DNA of 64,000 bases from Anthoceros angustus (taxonomy: Eukaryota; Plantae; Anthocerotophyta), in NCBI GenBank assembly GCA_010909165.1, contig MU008174.1, forward strand, positions 806,001-870,000. The letters are read 5' to 3'. The stretch's first letter is position 1; every line of letters begins with the position of its first letter. Shown here one piece after another: positions 26,505 to 64,000 of this stretch. The notes beneath the pieces were generated by a model. That model was not told the DNA's origin. It saw nothing but the letters and a program-made list of their open reading frames with translations, and did no database searches. The position numbers were made by a program, and so were the translations under genes.

Positions 26505-29500
26505 TCAAGATGGTTCACACTGTCCTCCCTTTATTTTGGAACGAACTTGTTTTAACCTCGCACATCCACCTTCCCCGTCGGAATGTATTTTATCCATAGC
26601 TAGGAAACCATGCACCACTCCGTCCTTGTCTGTCCACCAGCTCTGACCTGGCTGCTTCCATGCCCTGACTCGTCTCCTTCTTGCCTGCATCTCTTGTGCC
26701 TGCTCCCACATTTGGGCACTTGTGTATATGTTCGCCATCAACACATATGCTGCAGCATCACTTTTGTCCAAATTCACTGCTTCATTAAAAGCATGTCGTC
26801 CTACCTCCACATTACACCACTTTCGACAAGCACCCAAGAGAGTGTGCCAAACTGCAGCATCAGGCATTGCAGGCATTCTCCTTACCAAAGCTAGCGCCTC
26901 CTCAAGGTGGCCTGCACGACCCATAAGATCTACCATGCACGTGTAGTGCTCTGCTGTCGGAGTGATGCCATAGTGTGTGCTCATGGTATCGAAGTACTCA
27001 AGCCCCTTGTGCACCAGACCTGCGTGACTGCATACTTTTAGAACACTGAGGAATGTGATGCCAGTGGGTTCTACACCATGCTCTCGCATTTTATGAAACA
27101 AGTCAGAGACTACATCACCGTCTCCTTGATCGGTGTAGCCAGAGATTAGCGCATTCCAGGCTACGATGTCTCTTTCAGCCAACATATCAAACACCTTTTG
27201 TGCATCAACCATGCTCCCAGACTTTCCATACATGTTTATCAAACTGACAGCTACTAGCACATTGCTGTCCAGCCCTTGTTCTTCAATCTGTGCATGAATC
27301 CTCCTTCCCAGATGTAGAGCAGCTACATTGGCACATGCTTGCAGGAGGCACACAAATGTCACAGAATCCGGTGCAACAGTGCCTTCTTCATGCATAGCCC
27401 GGTAGAGACATAGAGCTTCGAGGTCCAAGCCCTGCTGGAAGTATCCTGTTATCATGGCATTCCACGTCACCACGTCTTTCTGGGTAAGCCTGTCAAACAT
27501 TTTTTGAGCATCTCCCAGGCTGCCACACTTGGCATACATATCTACCAAACTATTGGCTACAAACATATCAGCTGGAAGACCTCGTTCTCTAATTTGTGCA
27601 TGAAGCTGCTTGCCCTTCTCCAAAGCTGAGACTCCTACACTTGCACATGCTTGTAGGACGGACACAAAAGTCACAGAATCTGGTGCAACCCTTCCTGCTT
27701 CTTCCATAGCCTTGTGAAGACGAAGGGCTTCCTGGCCCATGCCCTGCTGCGAATGTCCTGCAATCATGGCATTCCACATTACGACATCTTTCTCAGAGAG
27801 CCTGTCAAACATTCTTTGTGTGTCTTCAAACCTTCCAGACTTTGCGTATCCTGCTAATAGAGTGGTCCATGTAACCACATTTTTGTCATCAAGTCTGTAG
27901 AATACATGCTCAGCGTCCTCTAGGCTTCCACACTTTGCGTACATGTCTACCAAGCTGCAACCTATAATAGCGTTGACCGTGAGTCCTAGTTCTTCAATCT
28001 GTGCGTGAAGCTGTTTCCCTTTCTGCAAAGCCTGGATACCCACACTTGCACATGCCTGCAGAAGAGACACAAATGTCACAGGATCTGGTACAGCAAAGCC
28101 CTCGTCTTGCATATCTGTGTAGAGATGAAGGGCTTCCTGACCCATGCCACGCTGGGCATATCCTGCTATCAAAGCTGTCCACGTGACCACGTCTTTTTTA
28201 TCAAGATCGTCAAATGCTCTTTGAGCATCTTCCAAGCTGCCGCACTTGGCATACATGTTCACCAAACTGTTGGCTACAAACACATCAGCTTGCAGGCCGC
28301 GTTCTCTAATTTCCCACTGCATCTGCCTCCCTTTCTCCAAAGCAGGCGTGCCCACACTTGCACATGCCTGCAGAAGGCACACAAATGTCACAGAATCGGG
28401 TGCAACAGTGCCTATTTCTTGCATCGCTCTGTAAACTAGAAGGGCTTCCTGCAGCATGCCCTGCTGGGAATACCCTGCAATCATAGCATTCCATGTCGTC
28501 ACATTCTTATGAGGAAGTCCATCAAACACACCCTGAGCATCCACTAGGCTGCCACACTTCACGTACATCTTCACCAGACTGCAACCTACAACAACATCAA
28601 TCTGAAGTCCTCGTTCTCCAATATGTGCATGAAGCTGTTTGCCCTTCTCCAAAGCAGGGGCGCCCAAACTTGCACACCCCTGCAGGAGGCACAAAAAAGT
28701 CACAGAATCGGGTGAAGTTATGCCTTCCTCTTGCATAGTACTGTAAAGCCTGAAGGCTTCCTGCCACATGCTCTGCTGAGAATATCCTGCTATCATAGCA
28801 TTCCACGACACTATATCCTTTTGGCCAAGTGCGTCGAACACTCTTCGAGCATCTTCCAAACTGCCACACTTTGCATACATGTCCATCAAGGAATTCCAAA
28901 CAAACAAATCAGGCTCAGAACCATCAAACCCACTGGCTAGCACATCAGCATGCACCTGCTGCCCAGCTTTCAAGTCCGATTCCCTTGCACAAGCTTGAAG
29001 GACTGCGACAAATACATGCCCATCTGGCTTCACACTTGACCTGCCCATCTCATACAATTCTATCGCCTGCTCAGCCAGCCCCTGGTTAACATGTGCAGAG
29101 ATTATGGAAGACCACATAAAAGCATCTGGCTTGGCAACCACAGTAAAGACAGCCATCGCTTCGTGCAACCTGCCATGAGAAGCATACATTCGAATGATGT
29201 GGTTGCACAAGAACGTGTCCAACTCATACCCCTGCTCCACAATGAGAGCATGAACACGGCGACCCAGAGCCAGATCCCTCTGATCCACACATTTTTTCAT
29301 GAAGTTATAGAAAACAGATGCAGCTATACCACTCCCTCTCTGCACCAGAACTCCCAGACCCTCAACAGCCTCAGTGAGCTGCTCCTGCTTACATAGTTGG
29401 CTCACGCTTTCAGCTGATACGGCCCTCTCGTATCCTGCAGACCTGCCAGGGTCCCGATCACGACCCGTCTGCATTTCCATAGCAGACAGTTCCACATCAG

Positions 29501-29795
29501 CCCAAGCTGGCTTGCACAGGGACTCTGTGTGCCAGAAGCCCCGAGAATGCACCCTGTGCTCAAGTTGCCTGCTGTCCCCCCAATGTGTATGGTCCAGAAA
29601 ACACCGTCGCCAGAGGAACTCATGACGTCCACCCTTCCCAGCCAGGAGGCATTCTCTTGAACGGTCTGAGATCGGTGCAAGGCTCCCCCCACTGGAGGCA
29701 TCCTTGCTCCGTAACTCTTCCCACCTTGAAGTCAGGCCAGCGGGCCTTATCCTCCGACACCTGTAATCCCACCAATTCTTTCTCCAAGCATCCAT
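26505..29795 (-). CDS. PLS-class PPR protein, E1-E2 plus truncated WW-type DYW N-terminus (no deaminase); PPR-1
   Basis: 1096-aa single ORF with 104-aa P-L-S triplets and one SS motif. It ends WKQPGQSWWTD..VHGF.. and stops before any HxE/CxxC. Confidence 0.95.
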   Translation of the reverse strand: MDAWRKNWWDYRCRRIRPAGLTSRWEELRSKDASSGGSLAPISDRSRECLLAGKGGRHEFLWRRCFLDHTHWGDSRQLEHRVHSRGFWHTESLCKPAWADVELSAMEMQTGRDRDPGRSAGYERAVSAESVSQLCKQEQLTEAVEGLGVLVQRGSGIAASVFYNFMKKCVDQRDLALGRRVHALIVEQGYELDTFLCNHIIRMYASHGRLHEAMAVFTVVAKPDAFMWSSIISAHVNQGLAEQAIELYEMGRSSVKPDGHVFVAVLQACARESDLKAGQQVHADVLASGFDGSEPDLFVWNSLMDMYAKCGSLEDARRVFDALGQKDIVSWNAMIAGYSQQSMWQEAFRLYSTMQEEGITSPDSVTFLCLLQGCASLGAPALEKGKQLHAHIGERGLQIDVVVGCSLVKMYVKCGSLVDAQGVFDGLPHKNVTTWNAMIAGYSQQGMLQEALLVYRAMQEIGTVAPDSVTFVCLLQACASVGTPALEKGRQMQWEIRERGLQADVFVANSLVNMYAKCGSLEDAQRAFDDLDKKDVVTWTALIAGYAQRGMGQEALHLYTDMQDEGFAVPDPVTFVSLLQACASVGIQALQKGKQLHAQIEELGLTVNAIIGCSLVDMYAKCGSLEDAEHVFYRLDDKNVVTWTTLLAGYAKSGRFEDTQRMFDRLSEKDVVMWNAMIAGHSQQGMGQEALRLHKAMEEAGRVAPDSVTFVSVLQACASVGVSALEKGKQLHAQIRERGLPADMFVANSLVDMYAKCGSLGDAQKMFDRLTQKDVVTWNAMITGYFQQGLDLEALCLYRAMHEEGTVAPDSVTFVCLLQACANVAALHLGRRIHAQIEEQGLDSNVLVAVSLINMYGKSGSMVDAQKVFDMLAERDIVAWNALISGYTDQGDGDVVSDLFHKMREHGVEPTGITFLSVLKVCSHAGLVHKGLEYFDTMSTHYGITPTAEHYTCMVDLMGRAGHLEEALALVRRMPAMPDAAVWHTLLGACRKWCNVEVGRHAFNEAVNLDKSDAAAYVLMANIYTSAQMWEQAQEMQARRRRVRAWKQPGQSWWTDKDGVVHGFLAMDKIHSDGEGGCARLKQVRSKIKGGQCEPS

Positions 29796-30169
29796 GATTC
29801 ACCCAAACCAGCTGAGCTAATGACAGTGTCCATATCCACCGCATTCGTGCTTCTGCGATGTCAAGCCCAGACATTATTAGCTCCAGGTTTGCTGTCTGCC
29901 TCTCCCCGTCTTCATCGCAGTTGCTCACACATCTCTGTGGTGCTTGAGAGATCGGAGGCATTTGTACTCGATCATTGTTGCTGTCATATCTTTAGTGCAA
30001 GGAAGAACTCACGCATTTGTAATCAGTTGCTCTCACATGGGTAGTGTCTGGAAGGTCTTAAGGATTTGTATCTGGTCTTTGTTGCTCTCGCATCGCATCG
30101 ACGATCTCAAACATTTGTATTTGAAAATACTCATTTTGTGTCCCACTGTGTTGCTCTCACGTCCAGGCC

Positions 30170-30290
30170 AGGGGGCTACTAAACAGTGGGGTCCACCATC
30201 CGGGCACTCGCCCAAGACCGGTGCCCTCCGGTTCCCGGTGTCTATATGCTATAGCTCCATTTCCATGCCCATGTCCCCACGGTCACCAAA
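30170..30290 (+). repeat. Dispersed repeat family 'R', copy B
   Basis: CTACTAAACAGTGGGGTCCACCATC..TCGCCCAAGAC.GGTGCCCTCCGGTTCC aligns to copies A and C. Confidence 0.65.
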
Positions 30291-30878: not shown

Positions 30879-30883
30879 ACCAA

Positions 30884-32061: not shown

Positions 32062-35000
32062 TCATATGTCTTTCACTCTCGGGAGGCCTTCATCCCCAAC
32101 CAAGAAATTATGCACCAGGCCATCCATGTCTGTCCACCAGCACTGGCCAGGCTGCTTCCATGCCCTGATTCCTGTTCGCCTCGTCTGCATTTCATGTGCC
32201 TGCTCCCACATCTGGGCACCTGTGTATATGTTCGACATCAAAAGATAAGCTGCGGCGTCCATTTTGTCTACCTTCACTGCTTCATCAAAAGCATGATATC
32301 CCAGCTCTACGTTCCCCCACTTTTGACAAGCACCCAATAGAGCGTGCCAAACTGCAGCATTGGGTTGTACAGGAATTGTCCTTAACAAATCCACTGCTTC
32401 CTCCAACTGGCCTGCACGACCCAGGAGATCCACCATGCATGTGTAGTGCTCTGCAGTGGGAGTGATGCCATAGAGTCTGCTCATAGCCTTGAAGTACTGT
32501 TGCCCCTCGTGCACTAGCCCCTTATGACTACATACTGTTAATACACTGAGGAATGTGATGCCTGTCGGCTGTATGCCATCCTTTCTCATTCTGCGGAACA
32601 AGTCGAAGACACCTTTGCTGTCTCCTTGACAAGTGTAACCTGCAATTAGTGAATTCCAGACCACGTCGTCTCGTTCAATCAATGTGTCAAAGACCTGCTG
32701 TGCATCAACCATGCTCCCGACCTTTGAATACATGTTTATTAAACTGGCTGCTACGAGAACATCAGCGTGAAGCCCTTGTTCTTCAATCTGTGCATGGAGT
32801 TGCCTTCCCACATGCAAAGCTGCCACATTTGCACATGCCTTCAGAAGGCACACATATGTCACAGAATCTGGTGCAATTATGCTGCCTTCTTGCATAGCCT
32901 TGTAAAGACACAGGGCTTCCTGTCCCATCCCTTGCTGGGAATATCCTGAAATCATCGCATTCCATGTGACAACATCCTTCTGAGCAAGCCCGTCGAATAT
33001 CCTTTGAGCATCCGCTAAGCTGCCACACTTTGCGTACATGTATACCAAGCTATTGGCAACAAACACATCTGCTTGAAGTCTTCGTTCTCTAATTTGTGCA
33101 TGAAGCTCCTTCCCCTTCTCCAGAGCGAGGGTACCCACACTTGCACATGCTTGCAAGAGGGACACATATGTCACACAATCAGGTGCAACAAGGTCTTCGT
33201 CTTGCATAATGCTATATAAAGACAGGGCCTCCTGACCCATGCCTTGCTGGGAATATCCTGCAATCACAGCATTCCATGTCACCACATCTTTCTCAGGAAG
33301 CTGGTCAAACATTCTTTGAGCATCTTGCAACTTGCCAGATTTTGCATATCCTGTTATGAGGGTGGTCCATGTTACCACGTTTTTTTGACGAAGTCCATCA
33401 AACACGTCCTGAGCATGCTCTAGGCTGCCACACTTTGCATACATGTTTACCAGGCTGCAGCCTACAACAACGTCAAGTTTAAGTCCTCGTTCAACAATCT
33501 GTTGATGAAGATATTTCCCCTTCTCCAAAGCCAGGGTACCAACACTTGCACATGCCTGCAGCAGAGACACAAATGTCACGGCATTGGGTGCAGAGATGCT
33601 CTCCTCTTGCATGACACTGTAGATTTGAAGGGCTTCCTGACCCATGCCCTGCTGGGAATATCCTGCTATCAATGCTGTCCATGTCACAACATCTTTATAT
33701 GCAAGTCCATCGAACACTCTTTGAGCGTCTTCCAAGCAACCGCACTTTGCATACATGTTTACCAGGCCACTCCCTACAAGAACATGAACCTCAAGCCCTT
33801 GTTCTCTAATCTCTGCATGAAGCTGTTTCCCCTTCTCCAAAGCCGGAGTTCCCACACTTGCACATGCCTGCAGCAGAGACAAAAACGTCACAGCATTGGG
33901 TGCGGCAACACCTTCCTCTTGCATAGCACTGTAAAGCTGAAGGGCTTCCTGACCCATACCCTGATGGGAATATCCTGCCAACAGAGCTGTCCAGGTCACC
34001 ACATCTTTCTGACCAAGTCCGTCAAACATTCTTTGAGCATCTTCCAAGCTGCCGCACTTTGCATACATGTTCACCAAGCTGTTCGCTACAGAAACATCAG
34101 TTTCAAGTGCTCGTTCTGTAGTTTGAGCATGAAGCTGCTTCCCACGCTCCAATGCCGGGCTACCCACAATTGCACAGGCCTGCAGGAGAGACACGAATGT
34201 CACAGCATTGGGTGCAGCAACGCCTTCCTCTTGCATAGCACCGTAAAGGTCAAGGGCCTCTTCACCCATGCCCTGCTGCGAATATCCTGCAATCAAAGCA
34301 GTCCATGTCACCACATCTCTCTGCCGAAGTCCATCAAACACTCGTCGAGCATCCTTCAAGCTACCACACTTGGCATACATGTCCACCAAGCAGTTAGCAA
34401 CAATCAAATGAGGCTCAGTGTCTCTGGCCAAGACATCAGCATGCACCTGCTGCCCGGTTTCCAAGTCTCCCATCTTTGCACAAGCCTGAAGGGCTGCCGC
34501 AAACACATGCCCATCTGGCTTCACACTTGACCCTCGCATGTCACGGTACAGCTGTATGGCCTGCTGAGCTTGTCCATGGGTAACATGTGCAGAGATTATG
34601 GAGGACCACATGAAGGCATCTGGCACAGCAACCACGGAAAACACTTCCATCGCTTCCTGCAACCTGCCCTGAGAAGCATACATCCGCAGGATGTGGTTGC
34701 ACAAGAAAGTGTCCGACTCATACCCCACTCTCACAGTGAGAGCATGCACACACCGACCCACAACCAGGTCCTTCTCCACAGCACACTTTTTAATCACAGA
34801 ATAAAACAGAGTTCGAGAAACACGACAGTCTGTCTGCACCAGAACTCCCAGAGCCTCAACAGCCTCAGTGAGCTGCCCCTGCTCACATAACTCGCTCACA
34901 CTCTCAGCCATTACTCTCCTTTCGTATCCTGCAGGCCTGCTAAGGCACCCATCATCCGGCATGCTCCAGTTTGATGCATGAGCAGGACACAAACAGTCTC

Positions 35001-35169
35001 TTGCAAGGGGCCCTGTCCCTCTCCATGAAAATGAAGTGCACCGCGCTATGCACCCATGATTTCGTGAAGTATTTGGTGAACCAATCCAGCCAAGACTAAG
35101 CCTAAAATGCAACCCCAGTGAACCAGCACCGGAGCTGAATGTTGGGCAAACAATAGTTGCCACATCCAT
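32062..35169 (-). CDS. PLS-class PPR protein, E1-E2 plus truncated WW-type end; PPR-2
   Basis: ORF of about 1035 aa with PLS triplets and one SS motif. It ends WKQPGQCWWTD..VHNFLVGD..KDI*. First ATG at 35169. Confidence 0.95.
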   Translation of the reverse strand: MDVATIVCPTFSSGAGSLGLHFRLSLGWIGSPNTSRNHGCIARCTSFSWRGTGPLARDCLCPAHASNWSMPDDGCLSRPAGYERRVMAESVSELCEQGQLTEAVEALGVLVQTDCRVSRTLFYSVIKKCAVEKDLVVGRCVHALTVRVGYESDTFLCNHILRMYASQGRLQEAMEVFSVVAVPDAFMWSSIISAHVTHGQAQQAIQLYRDMRGSSVKPDGHVFAAALQACAKMGDLETGQQVHADVLARDTEPHLIVANCLVDMYAKCGSLKDARRVFDGLRQRDVVTWTALIAGYSQQGMGEEALDLYGAMQEEGVAAPNAVTFVSLLQACAIVGSPALERGKQLHAQTTERALETDVSVANSLVNMYAKCGSLEDAQRMFDGLGQKDVVTWTALLAGYSHQGMGQEALQLYSAMQEEGVAAPNAVTFLSLLQACASVGTPALEKGKQLHAEIREQGLEVHVLVGSGLVNMYAKCGCLEDAQRVFDGLAYKDVVTWTALIAGYSQQGMGQEALQIYSVMQEESISAPNAVTFVSLLQACASVGTLALEKGKYLHQQIVERGLKLDVVVGCSLVNMYAKCGSLEHAQDVFDGLRQKNVVTWTTLITGYAKSGKLQDAQRMFDQLPEKDVVTWNAVIAGYSQQGMGQEALSLYSIMQDEDLVAPDCVTYVSLLQACASVGTLALEKGKELHAQIRERRLQADVFVANSLVYMYAKCGSLADAQRIFDGLAQKDVVTWNAMISGYSQQGMGQEALCLYKAMQEGSIIAPDSVTYVCLLKACANVAALHVGRQLHAQIEEQGLHADVLVAASLINMYSKVGSMVDAQQVFDTLIERDDVVWNSLIAGYTCQGDSKGVFDLFRRMRKDGIQPTGITFLSVLTVCSHKGLVHEGQQYFKAMSRLYGITPTAEHYTCMVDLLGRAGQLEEAVDLLRTIPVQPNAAVWHALLGACQKWGNVELGYHAFDEAVKVDKMDAAAYLLMSNIYTGAQMWEQAHEMQTRRTGIRAWKQPGQCWWTDMDGLVHNFLVGDEGLPRVKDI

Positions 35170-35556
35170 CCGCCTTTGCAGAGACAACCTGTTTCCACAA
35201 GCTCAAGTTTTGCAGCAGGCATCGCTACACCCCCCAGTGGATACGTGCCAGATTATTGAAGTGTGTCTGTCAACTCCCAAATTCAAACCTACATGATAGA
35301 CACGTTTCTTCTCGTAAGCAACTCCTCCACGCAGCCCACAGAATCAGACAAGTTCCGACTCCCCAGGCTGGCTGGCATGGTCGACCCAACAGCCCAACCA
35401 TCTGTTCATTGAGGGGCGACCCACCTCATCCAGCCGCGATGGCACAGAGCCGGTTGCCACGTCCGTTCCGATTCATACTACATATCTGTAACGCTTTTTG
35501 AAAACAAATCAGCCATCTCGAATACATGAACTTCAGACCGGAGGTGATCACATCGG

Positions 35557-42749: not shown

Positions 42750-43049
42750 ACCAGGAACCTGTGGATTCAAGCGTGAACACACAACCCAGCTCGGTCACGG
42801 CAGCTGGGCCAGTTCCACAGATCGTTGAGTCCATATCCACATGCGTTAGCACAGATCCGCGAGGGCTTCAGCAATCTCGACTTCAGGAGGCCTGGGGCAG
42901 CTCAGACCGCAGTTTGGCGACCACTTCTGCCTAGCGTTAAACCAACCAACGATGAACAGTCTGATAGGATCTAGCCTGCAAAGACTATTTGACAGACACG
43001 TGCAAAACAGACGATGTACGTCTCAAACATCTATGAGGTCGTCTCAATA

Positions 43050-47405: not shown

Positions 47406-49138
47406 GCAAACCATAGCGTCAGGGTATTCCATGTGGCTTTGTGAGTAGCTGCTGCCATCGCCCTCTCGTAAGGCGCCAACTGGGTGGGGAGCACGCGGGC
47501 TCCTTCTTTTGCACTGCAGTCTTTTGCGCCCCCTCCGGTTTCGGCATCGTAGTTACGAGTTCACAACTCCCCAACTGGAGTCCTGTTCGGGAAAGGATGC
47601 ATCGCACGAGATATAACTCACTGCAGTTACCTCACGCTCGGGTCCGCCCTTCTCGCGGCAGCCTTGTCCGCATCTGCAAAAATGATACAAGCAGAATCTA
47701 CACGTTGCCCACGACCCCCGTGCGATCCGTCCGCGTCAGCTGGGTTTGGTTACCCACGCCGCCCCGGTTAGCCGCACCGGGTAGGATAGCCCGCCCTGCA
47801 GAGCAAAAGGCATCAGGACATCCCTTTCCGTACTCCTCTTAGCCCATGCAAATAATACTTGTTTATATGTACGTCTGTACGTAGATAGCCTTTCATTCTA
47901 TAAAATACAGAATGTTTGTATATTTATATGATAGATTGTTTTTCATATATACATCAAATAGAGATGATCCTATCTATTCTGATCCACTGTAAAAAGGAAA
48001 TCCCCAAAGGATACTATATCTTAGTCGGAAGTTAGAGTTTGTATGTAGGAGAAAAGAAGAAAACAAATTTGATCATACTTCAAAGGTAGATGGGATTTCC
48101 CGTCTCGTCTATTAATAATGTCTACTCTATTCATTATACTTTACTAACGACAATATTAGTTGGTTTGCCGTTCCTATACTTTCAGATCTGTTTTATTTTA
48201 ATTATTTAAATTTTATACTTGAGACTGCTTGTTTTTGTTCCATCATGTTGGAATGATTCTTACATATGCTTTTGGGCATGTTGGAAAATCTTGTGTGACT
48301 TGTTTCCTACCAAACTACTCATTTGATCATCATCGTTTAAACTAATATTATGCACACTATTATTTTTATCATATTAATTTATATTTTATATAATAATAAA
48401 AATAAGAATAGTTATGCAATTTGTAAAGTTTTTAAAGATACTTTTCTATCCACCATTGGTTTGAAAGCGATACCTAGAGGGTGTTCCTAACTATTCATTT
48501 GTAGTATTAATCATGTGATCCACTTATTTATTTATTATTCATATTACGTGTACCAGCAGTTCGTACAAGAGAACTTGACACGCCCCTTCACGCTAGGGAA
48601 TCGACCTGAGGGCTTTTCATATCTTCAATATTAATCATCTTAAGAATAATTATGATTATCTTTAGTATGATTGAGATTTCTCCTTATTTTTTCTTTTTGT
48701 TTGAACACGATGATGTGTATTGATATGTGATTTTTTAAATATATAAATAATATTTTAAAATAGATAAATATGTACATCATTTTTATGAAGTTCGATCAGT
48801 TGGGAGACACATTCTCTCTCTTATTCTTCGGCGTGGCTATGGGTCCAATGTCTTCTTGGCGAACGACATCATCCGGATTTATGCTTCTACTCATATAATA
48901 TTAAAATTTACGATTATTTTCTTCATACTTCATGTTTGCTATAATTGGTTCTATTGACATATATCTCATGTCCTAGTTGATGTTTTCCTAAATCACCTGC
49001 AGCCTTCTGATTCAAGATGTCTAAAATATGTTCTTTGTTATATATAAAACGGATAGATTGAGTATTTATATTTCACTTAATTTAAACCAAAAAACCCTAA
49101 AACACGCACCACCTGTCACAGTGAAAGAAAAGTGTCTC

Positions 49139-52306: not shown

Positions 52307-55279
52307 TCACTGGTTATCCCCACATGAACAGAACCCATCCACGAAACGGTGAACGGAATGTGCATCTCTAACTATGATCTCCCTCTTCTCAATCCTTGAC
52401 ATGATCTTGGTGCCGCTGTGGCAGTCATCACACATACGCAGATTCTTGGTGACCAGCAACGTTGTGCCGTCTGGGGTGTTCAAGAGCCCATACGCTAATG
52501 CTAGTTTCTCAGCATGGCCACACAAGGCATCTTCCTTCTCACTGTCAGACAATGGCTTCAACACCAACTCTGTGTGGGGTATATGGCCTCCTTCCTGCTT
52601 CAATCGTACGTTCACATTTGAAAGCTTTGAGGAGATGTCTTCCCTTTCCTCCCCCACTGTGAAGCCGTGAACCTTCCTGTTCACCTCAATCCACGCTTTT
52701 GCTGGCTTCTTCCGAGCACCTGCTGACTTTCTCAGCTTCTCTACCGTATCGACATCCTTCCATCTGCCGGCATTTGCATACATGCTTGCCAAAAGCACGT
52801 ATGCTGCTGCATTCTGAGGGTCCAGTTCCACAAGGGAATCGAAACAGCGCTTCCCACGCTCCATGTCCCCATAGCTTTTGCAGGCAGTCAGCAGAGATGT
52901 CCAACCTGCAGCAGCATTCTGGAAAGGCATTGTTCTCAACAGATTCTCCGCCTCGTCTAGACGTCCGGATCTGCCGAGGAGATTAACCATACAGTTGTAG
53001 TGATGCACAGAAGGGGTGATGTCGTAGTCCTCCTCCATCATTCTGAAGAAGTGCCGACCCTCCTCCACCAGGCCTTCGTGACTGCATGCTGCCAGAAGGC
53101 AGATGAAAGTGGCATCATTGGGCCGCACACCCTGCTGCTGCATCGCTCGGAAGCACTGTAATGCATTTCGACCATCTTTATGTTGCCCATAGCCATTCAG
53201 CAGTGCAGTCCATGTCACCACATTCCTGCTCTGCAAGCTGTCGAAAACTCCTTGGGCTTCCTTCAGGCTGCCACACTTTGCATACATGTCCACCAGGCTG
53301 CTCCCGATAACCGGATCGCCTTCCAATCCCCTTTCTTGAATTCGTGCGTGTATTTGCTTTCCCTGATGTAACGCTCCGATGCTGGCACATGCCTTCAAAA
53401 GGCACACGTAAGTGACAAGGTCTGCTGGCGTGAGGCCCTCCTCTTGCATGCTTGTGTACAGATCAAGGGCTCCTTGACCAAGCCCTTGTTGGGAGTAGCC
53501 TGCAATCATGGTAGTCCATGTGACCACATCCTTGAGCTGTAAAGCCTTGAACACTGTGTGAGCATCCTCCAGGCTCCCGCATTTTGCGTACATGTCCACC
53601 AGACAGTTACCAAGCACCACATCAATGTCAATGCCTCTTTCTTGAATCTGCAAATGAATGGCCTGGCCCTCACGCAATGCTCCGATGCCAGCACATGCTT
53701 TTAGGAGGCACACAAAGGTGACATGATCCGCTGGAGTCAATCCCTCCTGCTGCATGCTAGCATAAAGGTTAAGGGCCTCTTGACCGAGCCCATGCTGTGC
53801 ATACCCTGTGATCATGGTAGTCCACGTCACCACGTCTTTTGATGGCAGCTTGTCAAACACTCTACGAGCATCCTCTAGGCTCCCACATTTTGCATACATG
53901 TCCATAAGGCTGTTTGCAACCACCATTTCTGCTTCCAGTCCTCGTGTTTTGAGGTGGCAATGGAGATCTTTACCTTCCCGCAAAGCTCCGATGCTAGCAC
54001 AGGCTTTGAGTAGGCAGACAAATGTAACATGATCAGCCGGAGTAATTCCCTCTCGCTGCATACTTTCATACAGAGCCAAGGCTTCTGAAGCAAGCCCCTG
54101 CTGCGCATATCCTGTGATCATTGCAGTCCATGTCACCACATTTTTAGTGGGCAACCTGTCAAAGACGCTGCGGGCATGCACTAAGCTGCCACATTTAGCA
54201 TACATGTCTACCAGACTGCTGCCTACGACCACATCAATTTCCAGGCCCTTTTCTCGAATCTCGGAATGAAGCTGCTTTCCATGATGAAGAGCTCCAACAC
54301 TAGCAGATGCTTTTAGGAGGCAAACAAAAGTAATCTTATTGGGCGAGGAGATGCCCTCGAGCTGCATACTTGCATAAAGATTGAGGGCCTCCTTACCAAG
54401 CCCGTGTTGGGCATATCCTGCAAGCATAGCATTCCAGGTAACAACATCTTTCGTGTGCAGTCCTTCAAACACACGATAAGCATCCTTTAAGCTCCCACAT
54501 TTTGCATACATGTCCACCAAGCTGTTTCCAACAAACAGATCAGATTCTAGTCCTCTGGCCTGAATCTCGGAATGAAGTTCCTTCCCTTGGCGTAAACCCC
54601 CAATGCTAGAACATGCCTTCAGTAGTGATACATACGTAACAGGATCAGCCATAATGGTGCCCTCCTCCTGCATACTAGAATAAAGGGAGAGGGCCGCTTG
54701 CCCAAGCCCGTGCTGGGCGTACCCTGCGAGCATCGTATTCCACATTACCACATTTCTAGTCGGCCAGTTGTCAAACACTCTACGAGCATCCTTCACGCTT
54801 CCACATTTTGCATACATGTCGATGAGGCTGCTGCCCACATACACGTTCGGATCTTCAACACCCTCTAAAACATCTGCGTGAATTTGCTTGCCAGATGCCA
54901 GATCAGCTGCAGTGGCACAGGATTTAAGCGCTGCCACAAATACATGGTTGCTTGGCTTCACGGGGGACTGCCTCATTAGCTGATACAGCCGAATTGCCTG
55001 AGTTGGCTGGTTGTGTTCAGCATGTGCCGAGATAATGGAAAACCACATTGACGGGCTTGGTGCATCCAATTTTGTGAACACCTCTGTCGCCTCCTGCAAA
55101 TTCCCATGAGAAGCATACATGCGGATGATATGGCTTGCCAAGAATTTGTTCGATTGGTACCCACTTTTAAGAGTAAGGACATGGATATGCCTGCCAACAT
55201 CACCATCTTTCTGGACAGTACACCTTTTGAGAACACGATAAAACAGAGACGCAGGAACAGAAGATCCTTGGCTGACCAA
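52307..55279 (-). CDS. PLS-class PPR protein with a complete DYW:KP-type deaminase domain (candidate U-to-C editing factor); 5' end unresolved
   Basis: E1/E2, then KKPAKAWIE, CGHAEKLALAYGLL, KNLRMCDDCH and HRFVDGFCSCGDNQ*. The frame is open to 55381 but has no ATG before the first S motif, so an upstream exon is needed. Confidence 0.95.
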   Translation of the reverse strand: MVSQGSSVPASLFYRVLKRCTVQKDGDVGRHIHVLTLKSGYQSNKFLASHIIRMYASHGNLQEATEVFTKLDAPSPSMWFSIISAHAEHNQPTQAIRLYQLMRQSPVKPSNHVFVAALKSCATAADLASGKQIHADVLEGVEDPNVYVGSSLIDMYAKCGSVKDARRVFDNWPTRNVVMWNTMLAGYAQHGLGQAALSLYSSMQEEGTIMADPVTYVSLLKACSSIGGLRQGKELHSEIQARGLESDLFVGNSLVDMYAKCGSLKDAYRVFEGLHTKDVVTWNAMLAGYAQHGLGKEALNLYASMQLEGISSPNKITFVCLLKASASVGALHHGKQLHSEIREKGLEIDVVVGSSLVDMYAKCGSLVHARSVFDRLPTKNVVTWTAMITGYAQQGLASEALALYESMQREGITPADHVTFVCLLKACASIGALREGKDLHCHLKTRGLEAEMVVANSLMDMYAKCGSLEDARRVFDKLPSKDVVTWTTMITGYAQHGLGQEALNLYASMQQEGLTPADHVTFVCLLKACAGIGALREGQAIHLQIQERGIDIDVVLGNCLVDMYAKCGSLEDAHTVFKALQLKDVVTWTTMIAGYSQQGLGQGALDLYTSMQEEGLTPADLVTYVCLLKACASIGALHQGKQIHARIQERGLEGDPVIGSSLVDMYAKCGSLKEAQGVFDSLQSRNVVTWTALLNGYGQHKDGRNALQCFRAMQQQGVRPNDATFICLLAACSHEGLVEEGRHFFRMMEEDYDITPSVHHYNCMVNLLGRSGRLDEAENLLRTMPFQNAAAGWTSLLTACKSYGDMERGKRCFDSLVELDPQNAAAYVLLASMYANAGRWKDVDTVEKLRKSAGARKKPAKAWIEVNRKVHGFTVGEEREDISSKLSNVNVRLKQEGGHIPHTELVLKPLSDSEKEDALCGHAEKLALAYGLLNTPDGTTLLVTKNLRMCDDCHSGTKIMSRIEKREIIVRDAHSVHRFVDGFCSCGDNQ

Positions 55280-56160
55280 GAGGTCCAGTACTTCTACAGT
55301 CTCATGCAGTTTTCTCTCCTCACACTGAGTACTCCATATCCCAACCCTTGAAGCCTCTTCATCCCTTGCAACCCTGCAACATCATGAAGACTGTCAGAAC
55401 AACTGGGTTCTATTTCGAGGAAAATGCAGCTCAGAAGGGGAGAGGAGGATTAAACCTGCAACTGCTCTCCCAATCCGAGAACCCATCTTCATAGGATGCC
55501 TTAGACCTACTAATCGTCTGTGGTGGTAGAAAAAATTCCTCCTCCGTTCTGCTGTGATTGCGGTTCCTCTGCAATACTGCACATCTTTAGATCCCCTCTC
55601 CACCGATACACAGCCCAAATTTGTTGCGTTCACCTCAGATGGCAATCCAACAATTTCTGGGCAGCCGAATTACCTGAACAGTGTCTTGCCACCACTGGGA
55701 AGGATCGGTTTCCCACAATGCATCCTTTGCACTTTGGTCGCCTGCAGGCCAACTTCATGTAAGATTCTGCCACCGCCTCGGCTGCATCTGAAAGCAAAAA
55801 CTACGTGAACTCCATCCACACAGGCGATCACTCACCAGGCCCTGTTGCATGTTTGCGTTGCTCCGCTGCGCCCTGCAATGCTGATACGTACCTGCACCAA
55901 TCCTCCACAGGGCCGCGAGAACTGGGTTTGATTGATATCAGGTTGGATAGAATCAGACTCCCACCTTTCAGCATTTGTGCTGGTTCCCGGCACATCCAAG
56001 TCAGGAGCACCAGAGCTCAGATTCAGCGGTAGAGACGCTTCTTATACTCAATTCCTGTGCCATAGCTAGCCCAGACTGTATTCGAGTAGATGTATCCTTA
56101 TGTCTCTGTGAAGGGGAAAAATGGCTGCGTGATTGGAAACTGCCCACCACCCGGATCAGC

Positions 56161-59100
56161 ATGCCGCATGCCTGGGGCTGCGACGTCAGGCCTTCAGGGA
56201 AGACCTGGCACAAGCTTCCTCGACTTCACGCCAGAAGCCGAAGCTCCAGGTCTGAGGACTTAGCATTACGAAATACGTATACTCACAAGTATGCGAACAT
56301 CGGTGAAGTTGGAACTGTTGTCCCACAGAAGCAGAAATAGTGATGGTGTTGAAGGCAGTCCCTGCTACAAGTTCAGACAAAAGGCATATTCTATCTGCAG
56401 GAAGGAACCTGTGCTTGGGACTCAGGCCTTACAAGAAGTGGATGACGGTGGTGCTAAGCTGAATCTGCAACCAGTAAGACTGAGGGAGTCAAAACTGGCC
56501 TTGTCTGCTGGCAAGGTCATTTGGTAAGCCTTATGTGCATCGTTGACTAGGAGTGTCTGCTTTACATGCCAAGGTCACGTGCCCTCTAAGAACCATATGC
56601 TTCTGGTTCTCTGCTAACAGGGCTGAGAGTTCGGGAGGTGGATGTGCATTGAGAAATTTTTGCGACGATGGACGGCTGGAAGGGGCATTGGATGCACTTT
56701 TGCTTATGGACCACCGTGGCATTGTGCCTTCGGTGCAGATGTATAAGAACCTTTTGCAGGCTTGCATAGCAAAGAGAGACCTGGATAAGGCCAGGAAGGT
56801 GCATGCTCATTTAGCAAAGAATGAGTTGGACTCCGACAGATCTTTGAGTGAGTGGGTTGTCAACACGCTTGTGAGTTGTGGAAGCCTTGAAGAGGGGCTG
56901 CAGGTGTTTCGGAGGTTGTTGAACCCAACTACCTTCGCTTGGACATCTCTTATCACTGGGTATACAAAGGCTGGACGATGTCGAGAGGCTTTAGCAGTGT
57001 ATCAGTGGATGCAAGAAAAGGGTGCGCGGCCAAACAAACATACGTTGGTCTGCTTACTGAAAGCTTGTGGCAAGTTGAGAGAGTTGGTTAAAGGCAGGAT
57101 GATTCATGCTAGCATAGTCAGAGACAGATGGGAGTCTGATGTATTTGTGGGCACAGCTCTGCTAGACATGTATGCAAAGTGTGGGAGCCTTTTGGACGCA
57201 CAGTATGTGTTTGACAAACTGCCTGAGCGGAACGTTGTATCCTGGAATGCCATGCTTGCGGCATATACTCAACATAACCGAGGAGAGAAGGCTTTGCAGC
57301 TATATGATCAGATGCAGGAGGAAGGTGTCTGTCCAGATGATAGGACATTTGTGAGTGTGCTTCAAGCATGCAGCAGCATCGCTGAGGAGGAGGAGGGCAT
57401 TCTATTAGATGGACATTGTCTCAAGGTCCACTCGCTGAGAAGGGGGAAGGCAGTACATGCTGCAGCTGCCCGGAGGGGATATGAGGGAGATGTATTTGTT
57501 GGTACCACTCTGGTTAGTATGTATGCAAAAAGTGGGAGCATCACAGACGCCGAGCAGCTGTTCAATCGCATGTCATCCCGCAACGTGGTCTCATGGAATG
57601 CAATGCTTTCAGGATATGCTCAGCAGGACCAAGGAGAGACGGCTTTACGACTATATCTCCAGATGCAACAGGATTTTGTCATTCCAAATGATCGGACCTT
57701 TGTTAGTGTGCTACAAGCATGTGGCAGCCTTGCAGAGAAGGAGGAAGCGTTGTTGATTGATGGGCAGTCCGTGAAAGTGAAAGCACTACGATTTGGGAAG
57801 GCAACACACGCGGAGGCTGTTTCCAAGGATCATGAATCAGATCAATTCATTTGCAACGGACTGGTCAGTATGTATGCAAAATGTGGGAGCATGGAGGATG
57901 CACAACAGCTGTTTAACAGATTCCCCAAACGGGACGTTGTGAGATGGACAGCGATGATTGATGGATATACTCAGCAGTCACTAGGAAAGAAGGCTTTACA
58001 GCTTTTTGATTTGATGTCTTCCCATGGCGTTACTCCAGATGACAGGGCCTTTATTATTGCACTCCAAGCCTGTGGAGTCCTGGCAGAAGAAGAGGATTGT
58101 TTCCTTGTGGATGGACATTCTGTGAAACTGGAGTCACTGCAAAGGGGGAAAACAATTCATGCAGCTGTTCTTCGGAGTGGTTACGAATCAGATGAATTTG
58201 TTGCTAGCACTCTTGTTAGCATGTATGCAAAATGTGGGAGAGTAGTGGATGCAAAACTTGTATTTGGAACAGTGTCCCGATGCAATGTAGTGGCATGGAC
58301 TTCAATGCTTGCAGCATACGCTCAACGGGATCAAGGAGAGAAAGCTTTGCAGCTTTACTGCCAAATGCAAGAGGCAGGCGTGAATCCAAACAACCGGACA
58401 TTTGTCAGTGTGCTCCAAGCATGCGGGAGCCTTGCTGAGAAGGAAGATTCCTCCTCTGGACATACAAAGTCCATAAAACCGGATTCGTTGATCCGGGGAA
58501 AGGCTATACATGCTGAAGTTGTTAGGAGAGGTCTTGAATCCGATATCTTTGTGGGCAACGCTCTCATCAGTATGTATGCAAAGTGTGGGAGCATGGTCGA
58601 TGCCCAGCATGTGTTTGACAGACTTCCCAAGCGCAATGTGGTGTCATGGACTGCCATGCTTTCAGGGTATGCCCAGCTGGATCAAGCAGAGAAGTCCTTG
58701 CAACAGTACGCCCAGATGCAAGCTGAAGGTTTCAAACCGACTGAGATCACATATGTGTGCATTCTGCAAGCCTGCAGCTCCATAGGAGCTCTGAACCACT
58801 GCATCGAGATCCACCGTGACATCCTGGGAAGTGGGTATGAGACTCATCCTAATGTAGCCACAGCCCTGGTTCATGCATATGCGAAGAGTGGCAGCATGTC
58901 AGCTGCTCGCGCGGTGTTTGACTCACTCCACCTGCACAGTCTCCGGTCATGGACTGCTCTACTTGCTGGATACGCCCGACATGGGCAATATGAATCCAGC
59001 CTGCAATGCTACCACGAAATGTGTCTGCAAGGCATGGAGCCAGATGGTGTCACATTCCTTTGTCTACTGTCTGCCTGCAGTCATGCTGGCCTGGTTTACC

Positions 59101-59576
59101 AAGGCTTGGAGTACTTCAGGCTCATGACCACACACCATGGCCTTGCTGCGGGCATGGAGCACTACATGTGCATCCTGGACCTTCTAGGCCGCGCAGGACT
59201 CTTCCACAAGGTAAAGGAATTACTTCTACAAATGCCCTTCCAGCCTAATCTAGATTTGTGGTTGTCTCTGCTGGGTGCCTGCCAGAAACACGGTAACGTG
59301 GTGCTCGGAAGGCATGCCTTCAACTGCGCAGTCGATTTACAGCCAAAAGACAGCGCAGCCTATGTGATCATGTCCAACCTCTATGCTCATGCTAGTATGT
59401 GGGACTCTGCAAAGGAGATAGATGAAATGAGGCAAAGTTCGGGCGCATGGAAAAAACCTGGACAGACCTGGATCGAGCACGAACAACAGGTGTACACCTT
59501 CTTGGTAGCAGACCGCAGGTATGAAGTGCTGTTTGGCTTGCTTAACGACCTCAACTGCCAGCTGAAGAACCAATAA
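56161..59576 (+). CDS. PLS-class PPR protein with long-L (LL) motifs, E1-E2 and a truncated PG box; two predicted 5' introns
   Basis: Main exon to TAA at 59576 with four L motifs carrying acidic inserts of about 14 aa. It ends WKKPGQTWIE..VYTFLVAD..KNQ*. Two phase-2 introns (near 56280-56330 and 56524-56620) link it to an R/S-rich start at ATG 56161 (start inferred). Confidence 0.9.
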
Positions 59577-59728: not shown

Positions 59729-62700
59729 TTAGTTATGCCCTGCCATAGCAAGTCCGACTGAAGGACATCCCCCGCTGTCTTTCATGTTGGCTAACAGCTG
59801 TTCTAGCCTTGCATAGATACTTTCGCTCTCAGGATGCTTGATATCCCCCACCAAAAAGCTATGCACCACGCCATCTATGTCTGTCCATAAGCTCTGGCCT
59901 GGCTCCTTCCATGCACCGATTCCTGTTCTCCTCACCTGTATCTCCTGAGCCTGCTCCCACATCTGGGCGCTGGTGTATATATTCGACATCAAGACATATG
60001 CTGCAGCATCTCTTTTGTCTAGTTTCACTGCTTCATTGAAAGCATGGCGTCCCACCTCCACATCACTCCACTTCTGACAAGCACCCAATAGAGTGCGCCA
60101 AACTGCAGCATCAGGCATTACGGGCATTGACCTTGCCAAAGATAGTGCCTCATCCATTTGCCCTGCCCGACCCAGCAGATCCACCATGGATGTGTAGTGC
60201 TCCGCTGTGGGAGTGATGCCATACTGTCCGCTCATGGCCTCAAAGTACTCCCGTGCCTTTTTCACTCGACCAGCGTGACTGCACACTGTTAGTACATTAA
60301 GGAACGTGATGCTGGCTGGCTCGACCCCATCCTGTCTCATTCTGTGGAACAAGTCTATGACCACTTCACTGTCTCCTTGACGGGTGTAGCCTGCAATCAG
60401 TGAATTCCATGCAATGGCGTCTCTTTCGGGCAATGCCTCAAATACCTGCTGGGCGTCAACCATGCTCGCAGACTTTGAATACATGTTTATCAAACTGACG
60501 GCAATAAGTCCATCACCTTGGAGTCCTTGCTCTACAATCTGTGCATGAAGCTGCCTTCCCACATGCAGACATGCCAGATCTGCACATGCCTTCAGAAGGC
60601 AGACAAATGTCGCAGAATTGGGCGGAACAACTCCTTCTTGTTGCATATAAAGGTAAAGTCGCAATGCTTCCTGCCCCATGCCCTGCTGGGAATATCCTGC
60701 AATCATGGCATTCCACGTCACCACATCTTTCTGGGGAAGCCCATCGAACATACTCTGTGCATCCTCCAAGCTACCACACTTTGCGTACATGTACACCAAA
60801 CTGTTGGTTACAGAGATATCAGCTTGAAGCCCTCGTTCTCTGATTTGTGAATGTAGCTCCTGCCCCTCCCCCAAAGCCGGGTTGCCAACACTTGCACATG
60901 CCTGAAGGAGGCACACGTATGTTACAGAATTAGGTGCAACCATGCCTTCGTGTTGCATAGCCCTGTACAGATGAAGAGCCTCCTGGCCCATACCATGGTG
61001 AGAATATCCTGCAATCATGGTATTCCAAGTCACCGCGTCTTTCTGAGGATGGCCATCAAAGGCTCTTTGAGCTTCCTCCAGGCTGCCACACTTTGCATAC
61101 ATGTCGATCAGACTGTTGGCTACAAACACATCAGCTTGAAGCCCTCGTTCTCGAATGTGTGCATGCAGGAGCCTCCCTTCCTCCAAAGCCAAAGTGCCCA
61201 TGACTGCACATGCCTGCAGGATGCACACAAATGTCGTGGAATTGGGTGCAATAGTGCCTCCTTCTCGCATAGAATTGTAAAGATATAAGGATTCCTTCAA
61301 CATACCCTGCTGGGCATATCCTGCAATCATGGTGTTCCAGGTCACAGCATCTTTCTCAGGAAGCCCATTAAAAAATCTTTGAGCGTTCTCCAAGCTGCCA
61401 CACTTAGCATATCCTGCTATCAGAGTGGTCCATAAAACAGTATTTTTTTCACTGAGTGCGTCAAACACACCTTGAGCATCCTCTGGGCTGCCACATTTTG
61501 CATACATGTTCACCAAGCTGCAGCCTACAACAACATCAATCTTAAGTCCATGTGCTACAATCTGTTCATGAAGCTGTTTCCCCATCTCCAATGCTGGGGC
61601 ACCCACACTTGCACATGCATGCAGGAGAGACCCAAATGTCACAGCGTCGGGTACAGCAATTGCTTCTTCTTGCATAGCACTAAACAGGTGAAGGGCTTCC
61701 TGTTCCATGCCCAGCTGGGAATATCCTGCTATCAGAGATGTCCACGTGATAACATCTTTCTCACCAATCCCGTCAAATACTCTTTGAGCTTCGTCCAAGC
61801 TGCCACACTTTGCATACATGTTCACCAAACTGTTGGATACAAACACATTATCTTGAAGTCCTTGCTCTCTGATTTGCTTGTGAAGCTGCTTCCCCTTTTC
61901 CAGGGTGTGTGTGCCGACACTTGCGCATGCCTGCAGGAGGCACACAAATGTCCCAGAATCAGGTGTAACAATGCCTTCTACTTCCATAGCCCTATGTAGA
62001 CCAAGGGCTGCTTGACCCATACCCTGCTGGGAGTACCCTGCTATCATGGCATTCCACGTTACCACAGTTTTCTTCCCAAGTCCATCAAACACTCGCTGAG
62101 CATCTTCGAGGCTGCCACACTTTGCATACATGTTTACCAGACTGCCACCTAACACCACATCAACCTTAAGCCCTTGTTCTCCAACCAGAGCACTGGCCAA
62201 CAAATCAGCATGCACCTGCTGCCCAGTTTCCAAGTCTGCACTCCTTGCACAAGCCTGAAGTGCTGCTACATACACGTGTCCATCAGGCTCCACCCCTGAC
62301 CTGAGCATCTCATGATACAGTCGTATGGCCGGCTTGGCCTGTCCGTGGTTCACATAGGCAGAGATCATGGAAGACCACATGAAGGCATCTGGCTTGGCAA
62401 CCACAGTAAAAACATCGATTGCCTCCTGCAACCTGCCATAAGAGGCATACATGCGCAGGATGTGGTTGCACAGGAACGTGTCCGACTTATACCCCCTTAT
62501 CACACTGAGAGCATGCACACGCCGACCTAGCACGAGATCCTTCTTTACCACACAGGTTTTTAGGACAGCAAAGAACATAGATTGAGGGACACGACATTCT
62601 GTCTGCACCAGAACTCCCAGAGCCTCAACAGCCTCAGCAACCAGCCCCTGCTGACATAGTTTGCTCAAAATTTCCACCCCTGCCAAAGATTCCCTTAAAC

Positions 62701-62881
62701 GGGCAGAATTCATTGCAAGGTTGCCGTTGCCTGATGTTTGGCATCTTGAAGTCAGCCAAGCGGACCTCTTCATTTGGTCTTTGTGATCCCACCCAGTGTT
62801 CTTCGTTGGATCCAGAAAACCTGTTGCCAGGAGCTGCCCTTGCCTTCTGTGTGGATGAAATGCAACGCGCCAGACACCCAT
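59729..62881 (-). CDS. PLS-class PPR protein, E1-E2 plus truncated WW-related end; PPR-7
   Basis: ORF of about 1050 aa with PLS triplets and one SS motif. It ends WKEPGQSLWTD..GDIKHPESESIYARL..MAGHN*. Confidence 0.95.
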   Translation of the reverse strand: MGVWRVAFHPHRRQGQLLATGFLDPTKNTGWDHKDQMKRSAWLTSRCQTSGNGNLAMNSARLRESLAGVEILSKLCQQGLVAEAVEALGVLVQTECRVPQSMFFAVLKTCVVKKDLVLGRRVHALSVIRGYKSDTFLCNHILRMYASYGRLQEAIDVFTVVAKPDAFMWSSMISAYVNHGQAKPAIRLYHEMLRSGVEPDGHVYVAALQACARSADLETGQQVHADLLASALVGEQGLKVDVVLGGSLVNMYAKCGSLEDAQRVFDGLGKKTVVTWNAMIAGYSQQGMGQAALGLHRAMEVEGIVTPDSGTFVCLLQACASVGTHTLEKGKQLHKQIREQGLQDNVFVSNSLVNMYAKCGSLDEAQRVFDGIGEKDVITWTSLIAGYSQLGMEQEALHLFSAMQEEAIAVPDAVTFGSLLHACASVGAPALEMGKQLHEQIVAHGLKIDVVVGCSLVNMYAKCGSPEDAQGVFDALSEKNTVLWTTLIAGYAKCGSLENAQRFFNGLPEKDAVTWNTMIAGYAQQGMLKESLYLYNSMREGGTIAPNSTTFVCILQACAVMGTLALEEGRLLHAHIRERGLQADVFVANSLIDMYAKCGSLEEAQRAFDGHPQKDAVTWNTMIAGYSHHGMGQEALHLYRAMQHEGMVAPNSVTYVCLLQACASVGNPALGEGQELHSQIRERGLQADISVTNSLVYMYAKCGSLEDAQSMFDGLPQKDVVTWNAMIAGYSQQGMGQEALRLYLYMQQEGVVPPNSATFVCLLKACADLACLHVGRQLHAQIVEQGLQGDGLIAVSLINMYSKSASMVDAQQVFEALPERDAIAWNSLIAGYTRQGDSEVVIDLFHRMRQDGVEPASITFLNVLTVCSHAGRVKKAREYFEAMSGQYGITPTAEHYTSMVDLLGRAGQMDEALSLARSMPVMPDAAVWRTLLGACQKWSDVEVGRHAFNEAVKLDKRDAAAYVLMSNIYTSAQMWEQAQEIQVRRTGIGAWKEPGQSLWTDIDGVVHSFLVGDIKHPESESIYARLEQLLANMKDSGGCPSVGLAMAGHN

Positions 62882-63465
62882 TGTTCGCAGCCAAAGGATA
62901 CGCTGAACATTTGAACCCAAAATCCAGCTCCAGTGCGCCAGCTGGGCTAGTTGCGCTCAAGGTAGTGTCCATGTCCAGGAGCGTTAGGAAAGAGTCCCTG
63001 ATTCCGCAATCTGAAGCCCAAGTTCTTCAAACATTCCGCAACGAAAGTAGTCCAAGCTCCCTGCTGGAGTTCCCAGACAACAATGTCAACAATTTATGGC
63101 CACAATAAAACGTAAATCATGGGTTCCGATTTACTGTTCGAGGAACCAAATCGGCCTTTCAGCAGGGAGTCATATCGGCCTTAGATCAGGAGAGCCAAAC
63201 CCAATAGCTCATTCCCAAACCCAACAGTAATACGGCCAAGGAGGACATGAGTTCATACATGAGGGACACCATGAAGTTTAATGAGTTTGAACCCACCTAC
63301 CAAATTTCATGTTCCGTGGAAGTCTCCAAGCGTGAGCTCTACGACGACACAATTTGTCGATTGTAGTATGACGCATGGTTGGTACATGAGCAGTTCCATG
63401 TAGTCCTTTGGCTAAACAGTTTGTACAAGCTGGCTTGTGGTGGATGGCATGTGGATGCTCTGGAT

Positions 63466-64000
63466 ATGCAGATGGGTGGTGGTCCTCCTACATACAACCA
63501 CTCGAGGTTACCGGATGAGGCTCACCGGTCACCAGCCGCTCACCTTGTCAGGGCTGCAGGTGCAGGATACAGAACAGGAGCTCTGACAGCGGAAACCGTG
63601 AGAAAACTGTGTCAGCAGGGGCAGGTTGCTGAGGCTGTCGAGGCTCTGGGAGTTCTGGTACAGATCGAATGTTGTTTTTCCTCATCTATCTTTTATACAG
63701 TGCTGAAAGAATGTGTGGTAGAAAGGGATGTGGTTCTGGGTCGCCGTGTCCATGCTCTCAGCGTGAAGCAGGGGTATGAGTCGGACACGTTTCTGTGCAA
63801 CCACATCCTGCGAATGTATGCCTCTCGTGGCAGGTTGGGAGAAGCGATAGATGTGTTTTTCATGTTTGACAAACCGGATGCCTTCATGTGGTCCTCCATG
63901 ATTCTTGCCCACGTTAAACAGGGACAAACTAAGAAAGCCATACAACTGTATCATCGGATGCGGAGGTCAAGTGTGCAGCCAGATCGTCATGTGTTTGTAG
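63466..64000 (+). CDS. 5' part of a further PLS-class PPR paralog (PPR-8), cut by the window end
   Basis: GYRTGALTAETVRKLCQQGQVAEAVEALGVLVQ..GYESDTFLCNHILRMYASRG..KPDAFMWSSMI is the same N-terminal cap as in the WW paralogs. The frame is open from 63367. Confidence 0.9.
   Translation, partial: MQMGGGPPTYNHSRLPDEAHRSPAAHLVRAAGAGYRTGALTAETVRKLCQQGQVAEAVEALGVLVQIECCFSSSIFYTVLKECVVERDVVLGRRVHALSVKQGYESDTFLCNHILRMYASRGRLGEAIDVFFMFDKPDAFMWSSMILAHVKQGQTKKAIQLYHRMRRSSVQPDRHVFV

Follow-up and report, generated by a model that had tools for sequence, protein, structure and literature searches.

The hornwort DYW:WW domain is a named subclade of DYW domains that comprises 137 amino acids (aa), is active in C-to-U editing and has served as the basis of RECODE-WW (PMC12684383). 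DYW:KP domains catalyze U-to-C editing via Lys88, and engineered versions could be tuned toward either U-to-C or C-to-U activity (PMC11845758); among hornwort KP proteins, PMC9478123 (citing Gerke 2020) distinguishes two subgroups, DRH and GRP. For Anthoceros agrestis, 2,308 pentatricopeptide repeat (PPR) genes have been published, and an E+ subgroup is described as "exclusively enriched in hornworts" (both PMC13386178). The number of full-length KP proteins in A. agrestis has been tied to its U-to-C sites, and it was proposed that a few ordinary DYW domains of hornworts act in trans for C-to-U editing (PMC12548569). Under this published hypothesis, ordinary DYW proteins serve as donors, and KP proteins act on their own. 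Here we describe a stretch of 64,000 nucleotides from Anthoceros angustus (assembly GCA_010909165.1, contig MU008174.1, positions 806,001 to 870,000 of the forward strand; hereafter the window), in which the part from 26.5 to 64 kb holds seven complete PLS-class PPR reading frames and the 5' part of an eighth. We think it fairly probable, largely by analogy with known editing systems, that this region is a tandem array of nuclear hornwort-type PLS-class PPR genes in which the truncated proteins would mark C-to-U sites, with catalysis in trans from elsewhere, and in which a single DYW:KP gene (g5) alone would serve U-to-C editing.

Genes were delimited from the list of open reading frames, a tblastn search of the window against itself and Pfam. 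The members of the array are as follows.

g1, 26505-29795 (-): WW-lineage PLS PPR gene, 1096 aa, ATG at 29795, box KQPGQSWWT, degenerate 41-aa tail, without deaminase core
g2, frame 32062-35187 (-): WW-lineage PLS PPR gene, first ATG at 35169, box KQPGQCWWT, 22-aa tail
g3, frame 39033-42782 (-): WW-lineage PLS PPR gene, first ATG at 42749, 28 parsed motifs, box KQPGQSWWT, 50-aa tail with a recognisable E+ motif (PF20430)
g4, frame 43464-47405 (+): WW-lineage PLS PPR gene, first ATG at 43581, 31 parsed motifs, box KRPGQSWWT, 21-aa tail
PPR fragment, 48796-49014 (+): decayed N-terminal motif (…GYGSNVFLANDIIRIYAS), a dead array member in AT-rich DNA (GC 0.38) between g4 and g5
g5, 52307-55279 (-): complete PLS-DYW:KP gene, 990 aa, frame open from 55381, box KKPAKAWIE
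g6, 56553-59576 (+): PG-lineage truncated (E+-like) PLS PPR gene, box KKPGQTWIE, 32-aa tail, first in-frame ATG at 56706
g7, frame 59729-62920 (-): WW-lineage PLS PPR gene, first ATG at 62881, box KEPGQSLWT, 50-aa tail, E+ motif kept
g8, 63466-64000 (+): 5' part of a further PPR gene, C-terminus beyond the window end

The array proteins matched Pfam PPR families at E values of 1e-94 to 1e-163. Between 16 and 31 PPR motifs were parsed per gene, in P-L-S triplets that agree with a tandem period of 312 nt within the genes. The E_motif family (PF20431) was above cut-off in all seven complete proteins, which accordingly carry E1/E2. The N-terminal part of g8 shares 63-72% identity with the corresponding ends of the WW genes, and g8 is probably a sixth descendant of a deaminase-less gene of the DYW:WW lineage. 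Eight genes in 37.5 kb amount to about tenfold the density that the A. agrestis total quoted above would predict, if the genome of that species is roughly 120 Mb, as we assume. Tandem duplication explains this local excess. An exact look-up of the window proteins in public assemblies returned no match.

Six of the seven complete genes have lost the deaminase. A six-frame motif scan of the whole window placed the HxE...CxxC signature in g5 only, and Pfam DYW_deaminase (PF14432) matched the same gene alone (E 8.6e-34). The other six retain the box, as PGQ(S/C)WWTD in g1-g4, as the LW variant PGQSLWTD in g7 and as PGQTWIE in g6, with 41 (g1), 22 (g2), 50 (g3), 21 (g4), 32 (g6) and 50 (g7) residues from the 9-aa box to the stop. 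With HxE and CxxC absent in every frame, each ends in a DYW stump that has no catalytic core. The 900 bp downstream of each of the six genes revealed neither a DYW continuation nor a deaminase-core-like sequence, whichever frame was read; these three-frame translations past the stops, together with the whole-window scan, rule out hidden DYW exons and frameshifted continuations. Furthermore, g6 and g7 are convergent and their stops lie 152 bp apart, so that there is no space for a hidden exon between them. Taken together, this indicates that the truncations are real and not artefacts of frameshifts or introns. Because the zinc ligands HxE and CxxC are missing, the six truncated proteins are predicted to be unable to deaminate and, if they act in editing, would need a catalytic domain from elsewhere.

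A previous reading of the window made from the sequence only had described eight PLS PPR genes in 37.5 kb, HxE and CxxC in 52307-55279 alone, and five WW-box genes and one PG-box gene ending shortly past the box. The six-frame scan and Pfam agree on the second point, and tails of 21-50 aa bear out the third, with the g7 box being an LW variant (SLWTD). The gene count holds for seven full frames; the eighth is an N-terminal part whose C-terminus lies outside the window.

Behind the box, conservation is uneven. The Eplus_motif (PF20430) was detected in g3 and g7 only, and the corresponding segment is degenerate or shortened in g1, g2, g4 and g6. The stump as a whole is more weakly constrained and is degenerate in g1 and g4. 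In g2, the IYARL motif has a TGA where its Tyr codon should be, and homology to the paralogs continues in the DNA beyond it, which indicates that this stop is secondary. Truncated relatives in another assembly stop at about an equal position, after the E+ motif. Shared 3' flanks were considered for dating the truncation and were discarded; they could not be aligned, with DNA homology fading soon after the IYARL codons.

To place the genes, a maximum-likelihood tree of 80 proteins was calculated from the 215 residues ahead of the box and the box itself. The genes g1, g2, g3, g4 and g7 formed one clade with a support of 99 in the Shimodaira-Hasegawa-like approximate likelihood ratio test (SH-aLRT). 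This local clade is nested in a WW clade (SH-aLRT 99) that contains the complete DYW:WW proteins P0042, P0052 and three from Selaginella moellendorffii, as well as several truncated proteins from a Logan assembly. Thus both the grouping and the PGxSWWTD box (in g1-g4, with the LW variant in g7) assign the five genes to the DYW:WW subclade, and the complete deaminase of about 137 aa with HxE and CxxC is absent from all five. They are best described, as judged from the tree and the box, as WW-derived genes and not as WW deaminases. In contrast, g6 fell into a ten-protein clade with truncated PG-type members only (SH-aLRT 96), and g5 into the KP clade (SH-aLRT 95), so that g5 and g6 belong to deep clades separate from the WW genes. 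This shows that the hornwort E+ class has at least two separate origins, the WW lineage and the PG lineage.

Pairwise Nei-Gojobori estimates over 339 C-terminal codons gave synonymous divergences (Ks) of 0.66-0.80 and ratios of nonsynonymous to synonymous divergence (Ka/Ks) of 0.19-0.23 among g1, g2, g3 and g7. The comparisons of g4 with these four genes gave Ks 1.7-2.2 and Ka/Ks 0.10-0.15, and g4 is the oldest member of the local clade. The reading frames of 1041-1313 codons are intact despite a Ks of 0.7-2 between copies; as a rough estimate, a neutral 3-kb frame at such divergence would contain tens of stops. Together with the clade structure, these values show that the WW genes are old tandem duplicates whose common ancestor already lacked the deaminase, and that selection has preserved them. 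It is hardly probable that the truncated genes are instead functionless pseudogenes decaying after tandem duplication, which we rate lowest of the explanations considered. The stop position differs in every truncated gene, one stop is secondary (g2), a dead fragment lies at 48.8 kb and the starts of g5 and g6 are problematic, all of which would fit decay. However, long intact frames with Ka/Ks of 0.1-0.23 would not be expected of it, nor would the retention of truncated relatives in another assembly.

The paralogs have diverged in RNA recognition. The code pairs formed by the fifth and last residues differ at 38-67% of the aligned P and S motifs, and the number of motifs ranges from 22 to 31, so the paralogs should bind different RNAs. 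Orthologues of the WW genes were not recovered among the fetched proteins, where the best full-length identity was at most 46%. We also observed an extra 31-aa P-like motif (…TWTTL(L/I)xGYAKSG…QRMFDxLxEKD) between an S and a P motif, which interrupts the P-L-S order; it lies at the same place in g1 (residues ~640-670) and g2 (residues ~605-635) and at another position in g7 (residues ~525-555). The leaders of g1, g2, g3, g4, g7 and g8, taken from the first ATG, are basic, contain few acidic residues and are mutually homologous, consistent with organellar presequences.

Considering these data, the five WW genes of the array most likely go back to a single DYW:WW-lineage ancestor, whose deaminase core was already missing when local copying began. 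Nested among them are the truncated PG-lineage gene g6 and the complete DYW:KP gene g5, both unrelated to the WW genes. The alignments show that the PLS tract, E1/E2 and the PG/WW box are kept under purifying selection in the truncated proteins while the PPR codes differ. Each truncated protein may then bind an organellar RNA site of its own. By analogy with E+/DYW2-NUWA, E/MEF8 and CRR4/DYW1, these proteins would most likely mark C-to-U editing sites, and catalysis would most likely be provided in trans by one of the rare complete DYW proteins (PG or WW) whose genes lie in other parts of the genome.

Purifying selection on the PLS/E region, combined with erosion of the E+ remnant in g1, g2 and g4, would also suit RNA binders outside editing, that is, proteins that stabilise organellar transcripts or act in their processing, splicing or translation, for which no deaminase is needed. 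Angiosperm PLS and E-class proteins with non-editing roles exist, for instance CRR2. However, the editing-associated PG/WW box and E1/E2 are conserved in all six truncated proteins, and hornwort organelles require hundreds of C-to-U specificities whereas complete DYW proteins are reported to be few. A role outside editing is a possibility that we take seriously but consider unlikely.

The remaining complete gene, g5, encodes a 990-aa protein with about 21 parsed PPR-type motifs and hence its own specificity tract. Its last 133 aa (52307-52708) form the DYW:KP domain, with KPAKAWIE, HAEK, Lys88 in TKNLR, CDDCH and the C-terminus GDNQ. We applied the description of DYW:KP domains in PMC9478123 and PMC11845758 (132-133 aa, lacking xHP, conserved Lys88). 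Accordingly, g5 has KPAxA replacing the PG box, 133 aa without xHP, HxE, CxxC and Lys88; the C-terminal triplet, DNQ, is neither DRH nor GRP. Its nearest relatives, all from Logan assemblies, are 59-75% identical over the last 200 aa and end in GDRH or GGRP, with a few other triplets as well. Trans donors of the DYW1, DYW2 or MEF8 type serve many sites and have few or no PPR motifs; the ~21 motifs of g5 depart from this. The architecture is that of a predicted autonomous, site-specific factor of the hornwort DRH-like KP group and not of a short donor. Thus g5 would most likely be a lone U-to-C editing factor acting on its own target, and its position in the array would reflect gene-family density and duplication history, not functional partnership. 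An N-terminal module shared with the WW genes (…RMYAS…ISAH…HVFVAALKAC) was considered as a sign of common descent; as an unlinked KP protein of another assembly has the module too, it is a general trait of these PLS proteins and no sign of local common descent.

The arrangement in the window also invites the explanation that the linked protein g5 itself is the trans-acting catalyst for the WW and PG proteins beside it, the island being a module. Besides the physical linkage, the switchable activity of engineered KP domains (PMC11845758) would speak for this. On the other hand, g5 has a full-length specificity tract, unlike DYW1, DYW2 and MEF8, belongs to a deep clade apart from its neighbours and has a start codon out of frame. 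The chemistry differs as well, since WW-lineage domains are C-to-U-active (PMC12684383) and KP domains are U-to-C enzymes, and published counts for A. agrestis fit one KP protein per U-to-C site (PMC12548569). Linkage in a relative was surveyed for four KP genes on loci of 14-22 kb, which were extracted from the contigs of Logan run SRR33208241, a related assembly. No PPR neighbour was present within ~10 kb of three of the four. The fourth (P0152, L005:5916-8738(-)) lies head-to-head with a truncated PG-type PPR of 940 aa (L005:10001-12169(+)), 1.3 kb apart, and the two resemble the g5-g6 pair, which favours the linked donor; however, this neighbour is only 40% identical to g6. The comparison indicates that a pair of the g5-g6 type is not demonstrably conserved. 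We consider a linked KP donor very improbable.

The same low rating applies to a wider version, in which hornworts would have evolved a split editosome independently of seed plants, with WW- and PG-derived deaminase-less PPRs recruiting a partner, possibly a KP-type enzyme. If this doubtful scenario were true, the sites specified by truncated PPRs might include U-to-C sites in addition to C-to-U sites, and the linkage of g5 and g6 would reflect co-regulated partners.

The sequence-only reading had pictured the island as a modular system with a shared catalytic donor and had asked for a survey of KP linkage. Six genes are indeed deaminase-less and yet selected (intact frames, Ka/Ks ~0.2), and a dN/dS near 1 in the WW genes, named there as a sign against the idea, was not what we obtained (0.1-0.23). 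The functional module and the linked KP donor found no support, given the separate clades and the length of g5, and the survey, run on one relative with four KP loci, gave no sign of a rule. The general idea of borrowing a deaminase matches a published hypothesis; as for novelty, the WW box, the enrichment of E+ proteins in hornworts and the action in trans were already in print.

We next consider the donor expected under our preferred reading, that is, C-to-U specificity proteins served by complete DYW proteins encoded elsewhere. To our knowledge, hornworts have no known donor and no known NUWA-like or MORF partner. The six-frame scan revealed no short DYW reading frame in the window. A DYW:WW domain was then used as query against proteins of 193-612 aa, a set that covers little of the A. 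angustus genome. The best hornwort-like short match begins at a contig end and was set aside as a fragment. From Selaginella moellendorffii, a lycophyte rich in truncated PLS proteins, the search also returned several near-identical short PPR proteins (P0224, P0225, P0226, P0227 and P0230; 322-497 aa). Their box reads PGRSWWTD and their complete DYW domain terminates in DNYF, showing that the WW-type box is not restricted to hornworts. These short WW forms look like possible trans donors; alternatively, they are partial gene models.

Several observations weigh against our reading. A short DYW:WW donor was not found in the search just described, which misses most of the genome. The post-box tail is decaying in g1, g2 and g4, and the E+ remnant is not uniformly kept; in angiosperm E+ proteins this remnant matters. 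The gene starts add to this. No in-frame ATG precedes the first PPR motif of g5. An ATGATG at 55385-55380 corresponds to the starts of g4 (MMAACRVA) and of the KP relative P0139 (MCRVA), but one extra T follows it (55380-55386) and puts it one base out of frame with the open frame of 1024 codons. This shift would stem from an indel in the assembly or else from a frameshift of very recent date. Plausible GT…AG pairs of a 5' intron, checked by eye, failed to restore the frame, and a one-base insertion after ATGATG appears to fit better than a 5' intron. For g6, no in-frame ATG occurs before 56706, and the nearby out-of-frame ATGs at 56400-56720 (+) are all followed by a stop only a few codons later; a 5' intron or indels may be involved here. 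The defects at the starts of g5 and g6 make the status of both as working genes insecure.

Outside the PPR genes, the g2-g3 spacer contains minisatellites at 35550-37740 (periods 21-67 bp), among them a 29/35/64-bp array at 37430-37735. Adjacent to the array, the stretch 19000-26000 (+) carries the exonuclease and polymerase domains of a DNA polymerase B at 23026-23682 and 25217-25957, preceded by frames of 227-675 aa that match no Pfam family. These frames look like exons of a REV3/polymerase-zeta-like gene adjoining the array. A decayed P-type PPR motif fragment lies far upstream of the array at 9581-9763 (+). Three further frames are ordinary neighbours:

3675-4478 (+): bestrophin-like protein frame, membrane protein
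5917-6603 (-): PLAC8-family protein frame, membrane protein
14068-15567 (-): UNC-93-like protein frame, membrane protein

The array illustrates how the hornwort PPR family grows: a gene already without deaminase is copied locally, and the copies then diverge in their RNA-recognition code. Its two E+ origins sharpen the published question of where the deaminase for C-to-U editing in hornworts comes from, and six concrete candidate specificity genes are on offer. The importance is modest, as no new mechanism is revealed.

Compared with known systems, the six truncated genes share architecture and lineage with the hornwort E+ subgroup, for which the accessible part of PMC13386178 gives counts alone, without a split into WW and PG origins and without a description of arrays. 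The gene g5 shares KPAxA, the absence of xHP, HAE, Lys88, CxxCH and the length of 133 aa with the hornwort DRH/GRP PPR-DYW:KP proteins, candidate U-to-C editors (PMC9478123; PMC11845758); it differs from them in ending with GDNQ and in having the ancestral start one base out of frame in GCA_010909165.1. With the DYW:WW subclade (PMC12684383), the array shares the PGQSWWTD box and E1/E2, and full-length DYW:WW proteins stand in one clade with its genes; the published 137-aa deaminase is complete, whereas the array genes end 21-50 aa past the box. Finally, the angiosperm E+ and E-class systems (DYW2 with NUWA, MEF8/MEF8S with GRP23, CRR4 with DYW1) resemble the array in combining a PLS tract, E1/E2 and a DYW stump without HxE or CxxC, with the site specificity residing in each protein. 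In contrast to these, the stump of the array is WW-derived in five genes and unevenly kept, and its truncations are of independent origin.

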